A DNA stretch of 64,000 nt from Oculina patagonica (Eukaryota), in the NCBI RefSeq assembly GCF_052425735.1, contig NC_135758.1:38502001-38566000 (forward strand). Direction: 5' to 3'. How positions within the stretch are numbered: the stretch's first letter is position 1; each line of letters opens with the position of its first letter. The notes below the pieces were generated by a model. The model was given only the letters and a program-made list of their open reading frames with translations. It did not search any database and was not told the DNA's origin. Made by a program: the position numbers and the translations under genes. This document shows positions 10,836 through 25,900 of the stretch, piece by piece.

Positions 10836-12261
10836 CTATGAAGCGCCAGAGGTTTCGGTATTTGTAGAATGTTCGGCGTTTTCTGAGAGCCATTGCAGCA
10901 AGGTTTTTAATTTATTTGTCCGATTTGTTGGATCAGGACCCAGTCCTAGCACATTTCCAACATTTAACTTTTCTTGAAAATACTCCATGAGCTTACAATC
11001 CACGACGTATTCATCTGTTTGTAGGCGAGCCACAGCCTCCCTACGGAACTCGTCTAGCTGTTGTGTGAGAGTGCGCCCAGAGTCCAAGTGCGCTACAATG
11101 ATCTCTAACCCGAGGTCCGCCTCAGCATGCGCCCAGTCGTTGAGAATTTCATCTGGTGTCATTTCCATGTACCTTACCAATGGTACAATGTAAGGAAGGC
11201 ACACTCCTGGAAAAGGGCTGGGAGCTCCCGAGCTAAGGAGTCCAGCTAATGGTTTGAGGGTGCTGTGGTAGAGAATAGCTGTTGAGCAACACTGGTGATG
11301 GAGACATGACCATGTGTGGTGAAGCCGTGTTACCTGACAAGAGAGACCATAGATCAGTCCCGTGCACACATATAACTTGCGCGGAATTTGCGCCGAAATT
11401 TAACGCGGAAGGAAGAGAAACCGACAGGGTATAACAAACTATGCCATCCTCACGGAAATAGTCTTTCTTAATTGGTATATTTTATCTACATGATTTCTAT
11501 GATGTTTCAAATAACGTTTTTCAAATCTAACAACCAGAGAGTGATTTTCTAAATTCAGGAAGTTGTGTTATTTGCGTTTCGAACTACAAAATATCTGAGG
11601 TACACGGTAAAATCGTATTTTCAACATGACAAAGGTTGGTTTTCACTAGCAATGTTGTATAATGTGGGACAGGAATTATTCAGACAAATATTCTAAATGA
11701 CAAGCACTTCACGCATGAGGGTAAGAGCTATATAACGCATAACGCACAAGCTGAACAAGTCCTTTCTCGATAATTCTTTTCTCAGATAGGCCTCTGTTCA
11801 AACCCAACGCACTCGAACACGATCATTGATATATTCTTCTGTTGCACAAAAAGGATAGAAGAGAAAGAAGTAGTACCTGTGGTAAAGCGAGCCCTTCCAT
11901 GATAGCCATGAACGAGATGAGGTTGCCAAGTTTATCGCTCAGTACATCAGCCAGTTCGATGAGTTTACTGAGCACTTTACCCCTCTTACCCAGGTCACCT
12001 GCAGCCACAACTAGGGTCGCTACCCAGTGTGTCACGTTAGCAAATCTACAAAGGGAAAAAACGTTCATTTAATTATCACTGACGAGATGCATGTATGAAT
12101 TATTATAACGCATTTGGCATCTTACGCTTTTGTCCAAGTAATGGATGCAACCCCTTAGGAAGTCAATTTCTAAATCGCTAAATGACATGTAGAACTGTTG
12201 TCTTGAAACATTTGTCCCATGCTGGCGACGTCCCTGAAACCTGGCTTAGAAACACTCACGC

Positions 12262-12335
<74 letters not shown>

Positions 12336-15162
12336 GCTAATCATTACCAAGGAGAAGAGAAGAGGTTTGACAACAACACATCTTTAGAAAACAGTTTTTT
12401 TATATAAATGCTGACCTTGCCAGTAACTGGGCCCTTTTCTCTCTTCCTTGAGGGAGTGTCAGAATCTCCAAGCCTTTTGCTCCTCCAGTGCCGTCCTCGA
12501 TAGTCCAAGACTGGCGATGCGGCTCCTCGCCCCACTGCAATGCAAGATCCACGCGGGTCATATGTCTAGCGAGGGTAAGGCAGTCGCTCTCCAAGAAAGG
12601 CAAAAGTAGCTTTTCGCCTATTTTCTTCATCACATTTAAAAATATCCCCTTTTTGTCCATAGGCCCTACGCGCTTGGATTTGTCTTCTTTATCCTTCGGA
12701 CTCTCGACCTTGTCGCTGTCGTGGGTTGATTTTGAGGCCAGCACCTGTTCTGATGAAGAACTCGAATCGGTTGGGACGTCATATATCTCTTGGTTTGCAG
12801 GCGAGCCAAAGTCAGATCCAGAAGACGATGGACTTTTACTTTGCCTCGATGGAGGAGTAGAGTAGCACTCTTCAGACTCTAAATTGATTCCATCAGAAGA
12901 CGTATCGCGAGACGTGTCATGTCTCATCAACAACTCAGCGCCTGAATGTCTTTTCTCTGGGAGCGCGTTAAAACGTGGTTTTGAGCTGCCACCCGGTGGC
13001 AACCGTGAAGCTGCCGCGCCCACGGCGAAGGTTTGTAAGGCAGGTGCGCTGCATCTTGTTGTCAGCTGAGGACGCACCTTGCCGACTTTGTCAGACACAG
13101 TTGGATCTGAGTTTCGAAACGACTCCATCCTTTTGGGCTTGGCTGGGGGTTTGTCGTAAAGATCATCTTGGCTTCCTTTGGGTCTGTCATACAAACAGTC
13201 AGTACTGCCTCTTGGCTGGTCATAAAAAAGATTCTCTTGGCTGTCTTTGATGTTACCAGGCAGGCTAGCTTGACTAGATGGTTTGTCATAAAATTCCTCA
13301 GAACTATCCACAGTTGATGGTTTATCGTAAAAAGTTCCATTGCTACCATCTTCAGTAGGTTTGTCGTAATAGCTATCAAGGGGTTCCTCCTCGTTTAGTC
13401 CATCAGTTTTTTTGTTTACTTCATCAATTGTCATTGAAGAATTTTCATTTTCACTTGGTTTGTCATAAGTGTCATCCAAATTTTCCTTCTTATTAGGATC
13501 CTCATAAAAATGATCTTCTAAACTGTTCTTTTCCGCATGCTCTTCTTCGCTCTCTCCCAGTGGCGTCTCGTAGAACCTTTCTGAAATATTTTCATCTTTA
13601 GCGTCCTTCGGAAGGAACACGTCAGGAATTTTCTCTCGTTGTTTTGTCTGAACTGTCCATTGTAAATTTCCAGGTTTGGGCGAAAGAGAGCCGACTGTAA
13701 AGTGTCGAGTTCTATCTCCATTGTGATTGATCTCAAGATGCAATCCTGGGTCGCTATTCTTACGTCCCATTTTGTCGATTTTCTTTTGTCGCAAAGGCCC
13801 AGTACCTGGGGGTTTTGGCGGACAGAGGTTGGACGGGCCAGTATTGGAGACATACCTGTTACGATGATTTGCATTTAGACTTTTTAAGTCGTCTGAAGAT
13901 AACATAGTTGCATCCCGGCTGACGGCGTTCGTAATAACAGCTGGAGTCTTCGGAGATAACGGTTTCTTTTCGGTGATATAAAAGTTGATCAATTCGGCTA
14001 TGGAATCAAAACTGTTCGCGGAATCTTCCAGTCTATACTTTATCCTCGTCCCTTTCGACGAGTTCACTTTGCAGAGCGGTATGTGAACGGGCAGCCGTTT
14101 GTGTCGCACCACAATGAAACAGCTTCCAGGCTTTGCTGGGTCTTCACGTACCAAGAAGTTGCCGTCGCGACGCAGGTAACGCTCTGCATAGTCTGCCGTA
14201 ATCTTGCCATGATACCAAGTTTGCCTTTCTAACGGCAAGGAGTTTAGTGAGTCGGCATCTCCTTTTCCACGCCTTTTCTTCCTTTTCAAGAGGTCTGCTA
14301 ATCTGTAAAACAAAAGCAACCACACCATTTCAGTAACAGACCTTTTCACTGACTGGGATGTCACGCGACGCTAACAGACAGAAATGCAAACAGAAGCGTG
14401 ACGATCCAAAGAGACCCAGAAATATTTCGAGCTTTATGTTCAGTGTTTTACGTAATGCCTTTATCCCCAGTAGAATAAACAAGACCTATGACCCGAGGTA
14501 TACAACTCATAACAATGGAGCCATGCGCCAGCCGCCATAAACAACATCGATGTGGGCGGGAATGTTTCTAAAGTGATCTGTTTATCCCACTATGAAAGGA
14601 AACTGTGAAAGCCAGGAAAAGAAGTAAAAAAAATATTTCAAACCAAGAGCTGTTTATAAATTTCAGCAAAAAGTTTATTTATCTTACAGTGCTCATCCGA
14701 AATTTATCGCATTTCCTTGTCTGCTAAACGTATCCATTACAACTTTCTTGTTATTGCTTTGTCCAACATTAAAGTAAACAAGACCTCTGGGTTTGCGGTT
14801 TACAAGTTATGGCAGTGGGGTCTCCAGAACAACGTCAAATAACAATGATAACACCATTAGGAGCAGAGCACACAAATCAGATTGTACGCAGCGAGCAGCA
14901 AAAACGCGCGAGAGAAAAACAAAGGCGCGTGGCTTTTTCTTTCCCTCTACTCTTCGCGTTTTACACTGCTAGCAGATAATCCACGAGGCCGACCCCTTGC
15001 ATTCTACAACACATAACTACTAGAGCTAATAACTAACCTTCTGAAGGAAAGAGGCGATTTTGATCTGGATTCCTGAGAAATCTTTTTTTCGATCTTTACT
15101 TTAGCGGGTAGCGGCAGTGTCTTACTTCGGCTTCTGAAAGTACTCTGCGATGAAGACGACAT
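10836..15162 (-). CDS. BCAR3: NSP-family adaptor (BCAR3/SH2D3C/SH2D3A-like): SH2 domain, YxxP-rich linker, Cdc25/RasGEF-like domain; ~892 aa
   Basis: join(15038-15162, 12416-14302, 11877-12045, 10836-11333), all GT/AG, phases 2,2,0, 2679 nt. SH2 motif WYHGKI…DGNFLVRE…FDSIAELINFY. NSP-type GEF-like C-terminus: LARHMTRVD, GLEILTLPQG, LGNLISFMAIMEGLALPQVTRLHHTW, GLEIIVAHL. Probably co-orthologous to BCAR3/SH2D3A/SH2D3C. Confidence 0.9.
12262..12335. repeat. (ATTG)n microsatellite, ~18 units, intronic
   Basis: Directly visible perfect tetranucleotide run. Confidence 0.97.
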
Positions 15163-22901: not shown

Positions 22902-25900
22902 CTACATTAATTCAATATAAGCTGAAGGAACGTAGCCTTCGTCCTCGTCCTTTAACACTTTTGTCCAGCCACTGTTATCCATATCCTGCTCCAGAACAAC
23001 CAACACTTCTCCTTCATTCACTGACAGTTCACCTTCATTGGTTGCTATGAAAAGAAGTTGGTATGGCTTGAGTTTATTGTGGCAATAACAATTTTTATTG
23101 TTATATAGCTAAAAATGTTTTCCAACAGCGCGCGCTCTAGTTGGCTAATTCGAGGTCACATGACATCTAACAATAAAAACTTTTTCCCGCCAAAAGTCTC
23201 TTAGCGACGGGCAAAATTGCAGAATCTATGACGTGGGAGGGTAACATTGCAATGTCGACCGACGAGCGCCATTTTCTAAGCCTTCGTTGTGCTATATAAC
23301 AAAACAATTAATGACTGATCCCTCGGGAAACCAGTGTATAATGTAGCCTGCGCTGGATACATTGGAAGTAATATAACAAACACGAGAAACAGTGTTTCAT
23401 TGGAATATCCAAACACCGAGAAAACAGACGAAATTTGGAGTGTTTGGATAGCCGATGAAACACTGTCTCGAGTGTTTGATATATCTTCTCAATCGAAACA
23501 AAAACTACGGAGTAAACGGAGAAATAAAATAAATCTACCGGTATGCTAATAAAGACCGGGTATCCAAACCTTCCCTACGGTTATGATTGTCTTTGTTTTA
23601 ACTTGTTGAATTATTAATGAGTTGTAGAATTCTATGGCCAGTGCTCTAAAGTAGTAAAGTTATAAAGCTTATTTAGAAGAGAAAAATGAAGAAGTTTATT
23701 ACCTTGAAAATCATAAATTACTTTACATTGAAGCTCTTCCTCTTCAAACTCTTCCTCGTCATCAGGCTCCTCAGCAGGTGGGACCAGCAAAGCCGGGGGA
23801 GGGGCTGGTACGGGCGGGACCTGGGCTGGGGCCCCATCAGACATATCAGCAGCCGGTGCCGGGGGTGGTTGGGCCTTGACTGTCTTTGAGTACATTTCAG
23901 GAGCTGGTGGGGCATCCCTGTTCTCCAACGCTGCTTGGTAACACTGTCAAGGAAAGCGAAAAGGTGTTAGAGGAATATCACAATACTACAACAACAACAA
24001 CAGCAACAACAACCATTTTATTTTGCCAGAGATAAATATAAATAATTACACAAAAATAAATTAAACTAAAATAGGCCTTAAAACACTTCTCAATGCTAGC
24101 CCTCAAAATAAGTAGAAGGAAATGGAATAAAAATCTTAAGAAATACCCGGTTGATCTACGGAAATCTTCTGGACTCTTCCAATCATCTTCGGAAGTTTTC
24201 GGGAATCTCGGGCAAATTAACGAAAAATGCTCTTTGTCTAAACCATTATCAGAATTCCGTAAATTTGCCCTAGGTGTTATTTTACATTATAAATAGGACA
24301 CGAGATTGCCGAAAAAGGCACATGTAACTTCTAGTAACTAACCTGGAATTTGTGTAGGTCTTTATTAAGAGTATCAAGCTCTTTAGCATTTTCAGCAAGT
24401 TGTTGTTCAATGGTGTTTGGGTCGCCAAGAGATGGGTTCTGTCTGTAGACGTCAACCATTTTCTCCATACCTTCCCTGAAACGTAACATAATAACCCAAT
24501 CAAACTCCAAGTGGCTTTATGCCATAAATAAAAGCTCATGATATGCAGATTACTGTAATGTAGAAAAACTCAACAAGGCAGGAAACCATTCACGTTTGGC
24601 AGGAATTTCTCTCTATCGTGGGAAAAAAAAAACAAAAATAGTACAGTCAACTCTCGCCTTGCGGACACCCCGTTATTGCAGACACTCGCTATTACGGACA
24701 AAATCCAGATCCCCGGCGAAAGAGGTTTGACTGGAAATGACTCCCGCTATTTCGGACTCTCGCTATAACGGACACTAAACGACCCCCCGAGCGTGTCCGC
24801 TATAACGAGAGTTGACTGTAATAATAAAACAATTTCGAGTTGTTTTCGAGTGACTTTAACCGAGAAAGAAATCAGTTGTGTTTGCTTCATTCTGGATTTT
24901 CGTTTGGTGAGCTCTGTAATTGGTTTATAGAACTGTTGCAAAAGGCTTTCNNNNNNNNNNNNNNNNNNNNNNNNNNNNNNNNNNNNNNNNNNNNNNNNNN
25001 NNNNNNNNNNNNNNNNNNNNNNNNNNNNNNNNNNNNNNNNNNNNNNNNNNNNNNNNNNNNNNNNNNNNNNNNNNNNNNNNNNNNNNNNNNNNNNNNNNNN
25101 NNNNNNNNCCGGTCGGTTGGATGGTTCTACATGCAGCCTTCGTGACATAGCTAACTCAGCATTGAACAAATTACCTGGAGTTCTTGAGCTGCGCCACTTG
25201 TGAATCTAACTGTTGTACTTTCTTTTTAACCTGTCGAAGCTTCTGCCCAGGTGTTAAATTTTGATCATTTCCATCTAACCCAGCTTCACCATGCTGAGGA
25301 AACAATGTGTTAAGGTCATTCCATCGAAATAGAACCGACAGTAGATTTTCATTCAAATTTTGCCTATTACTTATTCATCTTAAGGGACTCTAAATATTTT
25401 AAAATAAAAGAGGGGCCCTGTATTCGTCAAGTTGCAGGAGGACCTTGTATACGTATATACCAAGAGAAAATAAATTCTTAACAATATCAGCTTCCAGAAA
25501 CATCATTATTTTAAACTCTCAATTTACGTTTCGTAGGAGCAGAGAAAATAGGGAAAGCAAAGCAAAGCAAAACGTAAAATATAAAAATAGATGTACAACA
25601 TCGACTTCAAGTAACAATTGACAGTGCACTGTAATTGAGGCAGAAAAACACCAAAAAGGAACAATGCCTACCAAAACTTTAGCTCTCCGCCAAGCTGACC
25701 CCGCCAGAGAAAAACAGATTTTAAATTATCTACATTTCAGTTAAAACGGACGTTTCACTTTAATCTTAAATTAAATGGCGCACGTTTTAAACATTTATGG
25801 GAGATTTGACTTTAATTTTTTCGAGAATGCTTTAGAATTTAATCACGGGGTCACTGAGACAAATGAACTTCGGTGAGATGTTTAAAAAAGTATATAAAAT

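Follow-up and report, generated by a model that had tools for sequence, protein, structure and literature searches.

What does an adaptor of the NSP family do with a tyrosine docking array of its own? The module formed by Cas scaffolds and NSP adaptors is a central hub of integrin and receptor signalling on which nearly all work has been done in mammals, in which multi-site docking of Crk lies entirely on Cas and the NSP protein is viewed as an activator and localiser. The question is raised by a stretch of 64,000 nucleotides from the stony coral Oculina patagonica (GCF_052425735.1, contig NC_135758.1, positions 38,502,001 to 38,566,000, forward strand), hereafter the window, which contains an NSP gene of the BCAR3/SH2D3C type whose linker has eleven tyrosine-x-x-proline (YxxP) motifs. 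The initial annotation of the window had suggested that this protein could combine the NSP and Cas-substrate functions in one chain, as a self-contained or an amplified scaffold. Of these two, amplified fits better. We show that the array is real, expressed and under purifying selection in coral NSPs, and we hypothesise that it adds phosphotyrosine docking sites to the NSP-Cas complex beside those of Cas, which we regard as the probable reading of the sequence data. The coral NSP belongs to a known family and module and is not a new kind of system; the array is what is new. Coordinates are positions of the 64-kilobase (kb) window unless a contig is named, and every part of the NSP gene lies on the minus strand.

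The eleven motifs, all recovered as first listed, lie at 12772-13572 and read YETP, YEDP, YDKP (four times), YDQP, YDRP, YDKP, YSTP and YDVP. The first nine form the main cluster of Y[DE]xP motifs (13147..13572), with F, L, Y or T at -1 and acidic residues ahead. The tenth, YSTP (12853..12864), occupies column 670 of our alignment and is orthologous to the YA[VT]P of sea anemones, and the eleventh, IYDVP (12772..12783; column 703), stands 42 residues ahead of the Cdc25-like domain and is common to sea anemones. The linker between the SH2 and Cdc25-like domains is 440 residues long and places 11 of its 13 tyrosines in YxxP motifs, one of the remaining two immediately preceding a motif tyrosine. 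Across 20,000 shuffles of the linker residues, YxxP motifs averaged 1.2 and never numbered more than 7, against the 11 observed. Spacings of 11 and 13 residues occur among the motifs (tyrosines at model residues 354/367/380 and 402/413/424) in a linker that is acidic and serine-rich (58 S, 41 D, 41 P, 39 K and 34 E among the 440). In an AlphaFold2 model built on a 20-sequence alignment, residues 141-545 of the exon product have a predicted local distance difference test score (pLDDT) below 50 and no secondary structure, while the SH2 domain scores about 80, and the linker is thus predicted to be disordered. The spacing and the acidic, disordered-looking character first described for this linker are therefore borne out. 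Tandem Repeats Finder reported no tandem repeat at score 30 in the DNA from 12700 to 13650, so that the periodicity of 11-13 residues is not a recent DNA repeat.

The gene runs over 10836-15162 and comprises four coding exons with a joined product of 892 residues. Exon 1 (15038..15162), identified by tblastn with P0036, has 125 nucleotides, begins with the ATG at 15162 and ends in phase 2 before a GT donor at 15037-15036. Exon 2 (12416..14302), contained in an open frame at 12400-14364, has 1887 nucleotides flanked by an acceptor AG and a donor GT, and encodes the SH2 domain, all of the disordered linker and the first part of the Cdc25-like domain. The core of the Cdc25/RasGEF-like domain is encoded by exon 3 (11874..12045; 172 nucleotides) and its C-terminal half by exon 4 (10836..11330), which ends with the stop codon at 10836; these two exons were located by tblastn with two full-length relatives, and the splice sites of exons 1 and 2 were read in the sequence. 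Transcript contigs from three public run sets contain the three splice joints 14302>15038 (from runs X1 and X6), 12045>12416 and 11330>11874, all GT..AG on the minus strand, and depth is hundreds-fold across the exons and near zero across the introns, indicating that these contigs are spliced transcripts. No joint was found inside the 1887-nucleotide exon in the three transcript assemblies, in which depth is continuous and even, contigs being a form of data that drops rare isoforms. Loss of this region by splicing, which would have undone the initial proposal, is therefore not what the transcripts indicate, and the array is retained in the mRNA. A poly-A raw-read run (X24) contributed only 9 reads, and thus strand and expression level rest mainly on the contigs. 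In relatives of this protein, transcript-sized contigs likewise encode the SH2 domain, the array and the RasGEF domain in a single frame. Searched with the array, the genome returned only the array itself, and searched with the last exon, only that exon; each is thus present in one copy, there is no NSP paralogue in the genome, and by these searches the gene is the genome's single NSP (BCAR3/SH2D3C) orthologue.

Identification as an NSP has stood up well. The SH2 domain (13978..14217; residues 50-129; Pfam PF00017, expect value (E) 1.2e-11; pLDDT 78-87) retains the phosphotyrosine-binding arginine in the sequence FLVRED (14140-14157), exon 3 has a Pfam RasGEF match (E 1.1e-9), and the last exon matches only BCAR3 (3t6a, 1.1e-12) and SH2D3C (3t6g, 5.4e-10) in the PDB. 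The best homologues, which include proteins of Stylophora, Porites, Montipora, Nematostella and Lingula, bear annotations as homologues of SH2D3C or BCAR3, the closest named ones being the stony-coral proteins of Desmophyllum, Stylophora, Porites and Montipora, and the identification is supported by the tree described below. The protein therefore has an SH2 domain with the FLVR arginine, an NSP-type Cdc25-homology domain, the Cas-binding leucine and arginine, and orthology with named NSPs. With the Cas family it shares a disordered region with multiple (11) YxxP motifs, a likeness limited to the motifs; Pfam gave no SH3 match in the NSP exons, and neither PF08824 (Serine_rich) nor PF12026 (CAS_C) matched in the NSP.

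Conservation of the motifs in related species is clear. All 73 close homologues (35-94% identity) carry the array, with 8-12 YxxP motifs in the scleractinian members. In the 20-sequence alignment, whose named corals come from both the robust (Oculina, Desmophyllum) and the complex (Porites, Montipora) clades, the 11 motif tyrosines occupy a column each, every such column being common to 11-19 rows, and Stylophora, also robust, has nine linker motifs of the same types. Computed over 14 scleractinian rows, identity is 87% for the motif tyrosine, 87% for the aspartate or glutamate at +1 and 94% for the proline at +3, as compared with 86% for the SH2 domain, 87% for the start of the Cdc25-like domain and 53% for the remaining linker. 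Conservation of the motif residues, together with the lack of a tandem repeat in the DNA, indicates that the units are old and have been maintained by selection on those residues. By this alignment, the motif positions have been kept since before the split between robust and complex corals.

To place the array among animals, a profile of nine cnidarian NSPs was run against 1.84 billion representatives and the best 150 hits were taken, 97 non-anthozoan sequences that combine an SH2 domain with a GEF-like domain of the NSP type being retained as cluster representatives. They include invertebrates (the sponges Oscarella and Sycon, the brachiopod Lingula, the nemertean Tubulanus, the annelid Owenia, the chelicerates Limulus, mites and a tick, the echinoderm Apostichopus and the hemichordate Saccoglossus) and vertebrates (lampreys and several fishes, with both BCAR3 and SH2D3C). 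Their linkers contain no YxxP motif in 48 cases, one in 32, two in 12, three in 3 and four in 2, with a median of 1. The expectation that no such array would be found in vertebrate NSPs, or widely in invertebrate ones, thus held for these 97, fish and lamprey included. The array sets the protein apart from non-anthozoan NSPs, yet it is no feature of this species alone, being common to all sampled stony corals, with smaller or independently expanded arrays in other anthozoans.

A possible starting point of the array appears in the same set. One to three Y[DE]xP motifs, typically DYD[VI]P, stand 20-80 residues ahead of the GEF-like domain in 19 of the 97 non-anthozoan NSPs, and the coral IYDVP is similar to the lone DYD[VI]P seen in other invertebrate NSPs. 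Carriers of DYD[VI]P-like motifs include P0080, P0106, P0134, P0140, P0180, P0193, P0201, P0205, P0216 and P0217, and among the examples are YDIP in Lingula, YDVP and YDTP in Owenia, and a mite with three. DYD[VI]P may be an ancestral single docking site, which is absent from fish and lamprey NSPs. Nematostella and Actinia have three linker YxxP motifs each, and three motif positions (YDSP, YA[VT]P and YDVP) are common to corals and sea anemones. Since the last coral motif is shared with anemones and DYD[VI]P occurs in other NSPs, the coral array seems to have arisen by amplification of a single, older site. Two further anthozoan sequences, P0070 and P0071, have 6-7 YxxP motifs, nearly all YDKP. 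A third, P0073 (Logan run SRR14699977), groups with Actinia tenebrosa in the tree and has 10, namely the three shared anemone sites and seven extra, mostly YKTP-like ones that lack counterparts in Actinia or Nematostella, and its expansion looks independent of the coral YDKP array. The NSP tree recovers an anthozoan clade at 100/100, with four lineages whose branching is not resolved, and the array may either be ancestral to Anthozoa and reduced in sea anemones or have been gained more than once.

A second question is whether the array stands in for Cas or works alongside it. The initial annotation had proposed looking for a Cas orthologue with an intact substrate domain, and there is one. The genome contains one Cas gene (CAS_C, E 1.1e-37), an upstream exon of which codes for an SH3 domain and, after it, 7 YxxP motifs (YDVP five times, YDMP once and YAIP once); the annotated Cas, P0253, has 962 residues with SH3, Serine_rich and CAS_C domains, and the exon junction was confirmed. 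The search for Cas also returned an NCBI protein of Oculina patagonica with 100% identity. The substrate domain contains 7-8 motifs in coral Cas, where they are conserved, and 9 in sea-anemone Cas, and the number of YxxP motifs in Cas ranges from 6 to 25 between species, with 15 in human (PMC5043372). By sequence, coral Cas is intact and has fewer YxxP sites than the coral NSP. On the NSP side, the sequence HLDSGR (11073..11090) contains the Cas-binding leucine and arginine, which align with positions 244 and 248 of the 3t6a chain, equal to human BCAR3 L744 and R748, and their equivalents are invariant in nine cnidarian NSPs. In the L744E/R748E (EE) mutant of BCAR3, binding to Cas is abolished (PMC8266394). 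A model of the complex, in which the GEF-like domain of the relative P0020 (93% identical there) was combined with the C-terminus of this genome's Cas, reached an interaction prediction score from aligned errors (ipSAE) of 0.82, against 0.01 for the best control, with a partner pLDDT of at least 87 and at least 93% contact agreement between runs; of 78 solved complexes 51 reach this mark, as do 2 of the 108 mismatched pairs. The best-defined predicted contacts are centred on the leucine and arginine of HLDSGR. Through this conserved surface, the Cdc25-like domain of the NSP probably still attaches to the FAT-like C-terminus of coral Cas. An intact Cas, the retained leucine and arginine and the complex model, taken together, point to an NSP that works with Cas and not instead of it.

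Two observations on the Cas locus may be recorded here. The substrate region of Cas includes, at P0253 residues 320-335 (G000:C4:27770456-27771547, minus strand), the sequence DDDYVDYQEIYG, in which YQEI is close to YEEI, the optimum of the Src SH2 domain, and YVDY is reminiscent of the mammalian YDYV site for Src and SOCS6, which is located elsewhere in the protein. An open frame of 304 residues (G000:C4:27806750-27807661, minus strand), lying some 35 kb upstream of the exon for the Cas SH3 domain, looks by eye like a retroelement integrase.

If the NSP does remain with Cas, what would its array contribute? The coral NSP motifs have the consensus [D/E]-x-[F/L/Y/I/V]-Y-[D/E]-[K/T/S/R]-P and those of coral Cas [E/D]-[D/V/I]-Y-D-[V/I]-P. 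Acidic flanks, a hydrophobic residue at -1 and a proline at +3 fit substrates of Src and Abl, and also SH2 domains like those of Crk, Abl, Nck and RasGAP. The genome encodes a kinase of the Src type (near G000:C3:12339199; c-Src is its best PDB match, E 1.4e-153), Abl (near G000:C1:32177314; ABL1, E 3.2e-108, in an exon with SH3, SH2 and kinase domains), a RasGAP (N-terminal SH2 region of RASA1, E 1.2e-60) and a Nck-like frame of three SH3 domains followed by the start of an SH2 domain, each SH3, taken as a single domain, best matching the corresponding SH3 of Nck. The preference of the Crk SH2 domain for pYxxP is older than the animals, and both Crk and a Cas with YxxP repeats are present in cnidarians (PMC5043372). 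In the mechanism we propose, the NSP-Cas complex would come to lie next to active Src-family or Abl kinases and the tyrosines of the NSP linker would be phosphorylated; the phosphorylated motifs would then serve as docking sites for SH2 domains that read pY-x-x-P, of the Crk type and possibly of Nck, RasGAP or Abl. Such a complex would offer about 18 YxxP sites rather than the 7 of Cas, in two chemical classes, YDKP on the NSP and YDVP on Cas. For the coral NSP we infer the phosphorylation, the identity of kinase and reader, and the physiological outcome from these parallels.

Several points weigh against this reading. The +2 residue of the NSP motifs is basic or polar (K 47%, T 17%) and not V or I as in coral Cas, and the -1 residue differs too, so that the kinase or the reader may not be the one that serves Cas. 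Crk itself was not recognised among 52 SH2 matches in the genome, of which about 45 had the surrounding frames read, a search that yields best candidates only, SH2 domains being split by introns. Furthermore, pYDKP is best known as a STAT1 docking site, pYDKPH, of IFNGR1 (PMC8912257). Finally, a complex similar to our model has already been solved, such that the pass of the model may reflect likeness only, and the GEF-like domain in it was taken from a relative.

Some candidates considered on the way, and some neighbouring matches, deserve mention. One SH2 frame, L041, was tried as Crk and rejected, its best PDB match being the C-terminal SH2 domain of SHP2 (5.5e-9) and Crk giving 1.6e-5. An origin of the array by exon shuffling from Cas was dropped, as BLASTP likeness between the array and the coral Cas substrate domain is confined to the motif (E 0.017 in a single comparison). 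Genome searches with Pfam STAT_bind and Abl F_actin_bind gave no matches, but the controls matched nowhere either, exons having been scored singly. Three Src-family-like SH2 exons lie within 130 kb (G000:C3:12209874-12210107, 12214309-12214536 and 12339199-12339429), two of them running into a kinase domain, which suggests a local cluster of Src-type kinase genes on G000:C3. Two identical SH2 exon frames of 77 residues, L024 and L025 (G000:C1:12380676-12380816 and 12406150-12406290), are 25 kb apart and appear Shc-like by eye; the pair stems from a recent duplication or else from duplication in the assembly.

Other accounts of the array have to be set beside the addition of docking sites to the NSP-Cas complex. 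The phosphorylated tyrosines might be read by another SH2 class, either as STAT docking sites or as phosphodegrons of a SOCS-box protein. YDKP is the commonest motif of the array and the STAT1 SH2 site of IFNGR1 is pYDKPH (PMC8912257), and pY117 of BCAR3 is a SOCS6 degron, as is pYDYV of Cas (PMC8266394). The genome also contains two frames with both an SH2 domain and a SOCS box (L042, L043). However, no coral motif has the histidine at +4, that position being mostly P, S, R or T, and to our knowledge eleven degrons or STAT sites on one adaptor would be without precedent. We therefore consider this account unlikely.

It is also conceivable that, once phosphorylated, the array engages the SH2 domain of the NSP itself and no outside effectors, the outcome being either intramolecular autoinhibition or intermolecular, multivalent self-assembly. 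An intact SH2 domain with the FLVR arginine is present on the same chain, and a disordered linker with numerous sites at even spacing would lend itself to multivalent assembly. Nevertheless, as far as we know, the ligands of vertebrate NSP SH2 domains are phosphotyrosines of receptors or phosphatases and not YxxP motifs, with PTPRA discussed in PMC8266394, and we give self-binding only a small chance.

A similarly small chance attaches to the idea that the motifs act without phosphorylation, as ligands of some peptide-binding domain in which the tyrosine is a structural contact. Conservation of the tyrosine, the acidic +1 residue and the +3 proline is evidence of constraint and by itself is silent on phosphorylation. 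On the other hand, we know of no non-phosphorylated [FL]YDKP ligand class, and a full-text literature search for YDKP returned STAT-related uses only. The protein is, moreover, part of a phosphotyrosine signalling module, and acidic residues at +1 and at -2 to -4, a hydrophobic -1, a proline at +3 and disorder are typical of kinase sites and of sites for SH2 domains that bind pYxxP (PMC5043372).

That the coral NSP took over the substrate function and became a self-contained scaffold independent of Cas, as first suggested, draws its appeal from the numbers, the 11 YxxP motifs of the NSP exceeding the 7 of coral Cas. It is very unlikely in the face of a complete Cas whose 7-8 motifs are conserved across corals, and of an NSP that keeps the Cas-binding leucine and arginine and passes in the complex model with contacts on both. 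Lastly, D, P, K and S are abundant in the linker, but we attach next to no weight to the array being a functionless by-product of that composition or of recent repeat expansion, as shuffles never exceeded 7 motifs, the DNA has no tandem repeat, and the motifs occupy orthologous positions conserved like folded domains across both major coral clades.

Two further short motifs lie in the linker. PPAKPKR (13129..13149) directly follows the ninth motif and is a candidate SH3 ligand of the PxxPxK/R type; the coral alignment has the consensus YDKPPxKPKR around this motif, and an adaptor with SH2 and SH3 domains could in principle bind both PPAKPKR and the adjoining YDKP. RKNSDP (13747..13764), an R-x-x-S-x-P motif, is a candidate site for a basophilic kinase or 14-3-3. 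Its residues R179, K180, S182, D183 and P184 are invariant in nine aligned cnidarian NSPs, while R[KR]xS[DE]P is found in only 5 of the 97 non-anthozoan NSP linkers. Elsewhere in the window, 158 N at 24951-25108 mark an assembly gap or a masked stretch.

An NSP with more YxxP motifs than its Cas is a natural experiment on the evolution of multivalent phosphotyrosine scaffolds, and it bears on whether the number and chemistry of docking sites can move between partners. We found no description of the linkers of cnidarian or other invertebrate NSPs in the searchable literature. The array also provides a data point for the history of the pYxxP/Crk network, and coral cell biology gains a testable signalling component for adhesion, migration, tissue repair and calcifying epithelia.

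Comparison with known systems helps to define what is particular to the coral protein. Like it, the vertebrate NSPs (BCAR3/AND-34, SH2D3C/SHEP1/NSP3 and SH2D3A/NSP1) have an N-terminal SH2 domain and a C-terminal Cdc25-like domain with the leucine and arginine. However, vertebrate and other non-anthozoan NSP linkers, with 0-4 YxxP motifs, have no array, whereas the coral NSP has 11, regular and conserved. Vertebrate BCAR3 is tyrosine-phosphorylated at few sites, namely Y42, Y117, Y212, Y266 and Y429 (PMC8266394). The sea-anemone NSPs (Nematostella vectensis XP_032240821 and that of Actinia tenebrosa) are orthologous and share three motif positions, but have only three linker YxxP motifs. In the Dok family, in Gab and in paxillin (Y31/Y118), phosphorylated YxxP motifs recruit SH2 domains of Crk, Nck or RasGAP, although these proteins differ from the coral NSP in having unrelated architectures and fewer sites, and none is an NSP. 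Paxillin and Dok7 peptides have been discussed in this context (PMC5043372). The coral linker also has a likeness with the Cas family's substrate domain (p130Cas/BCAR1, NEDD9, EFS and CASS4), which is also disordered, with many Y-D-x-P motifs in an acidic context. The YxxP sites of Cas are substrates of Src and Abl and docking sites for the Crk SH2 domain. Unlike Cas, the coral NSP lacks an SH3 domain, the Serine_rich bundle and CAS_C, and its motifs are of the class [FLY]-Y-D-K-P as against [DVI]-Y-D-V-P in coral Cas. With no similarity beyond the motif and a different motif class, the resemblance between the NSP array and the Cas substrate domain looks convergent and not inherited. We also regard it as quite possible that NSP convergently evolved a substrate-domain-like array in stony corals, and variably in other anthozoans, giving the complex two classes of docking site with possibly separate kinases or SH2 readers. 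If this is true, an independent YKTP-type expansion in a sea-anemone lineage would imply repeated selection for multi-site NSPs within Anthozoa.

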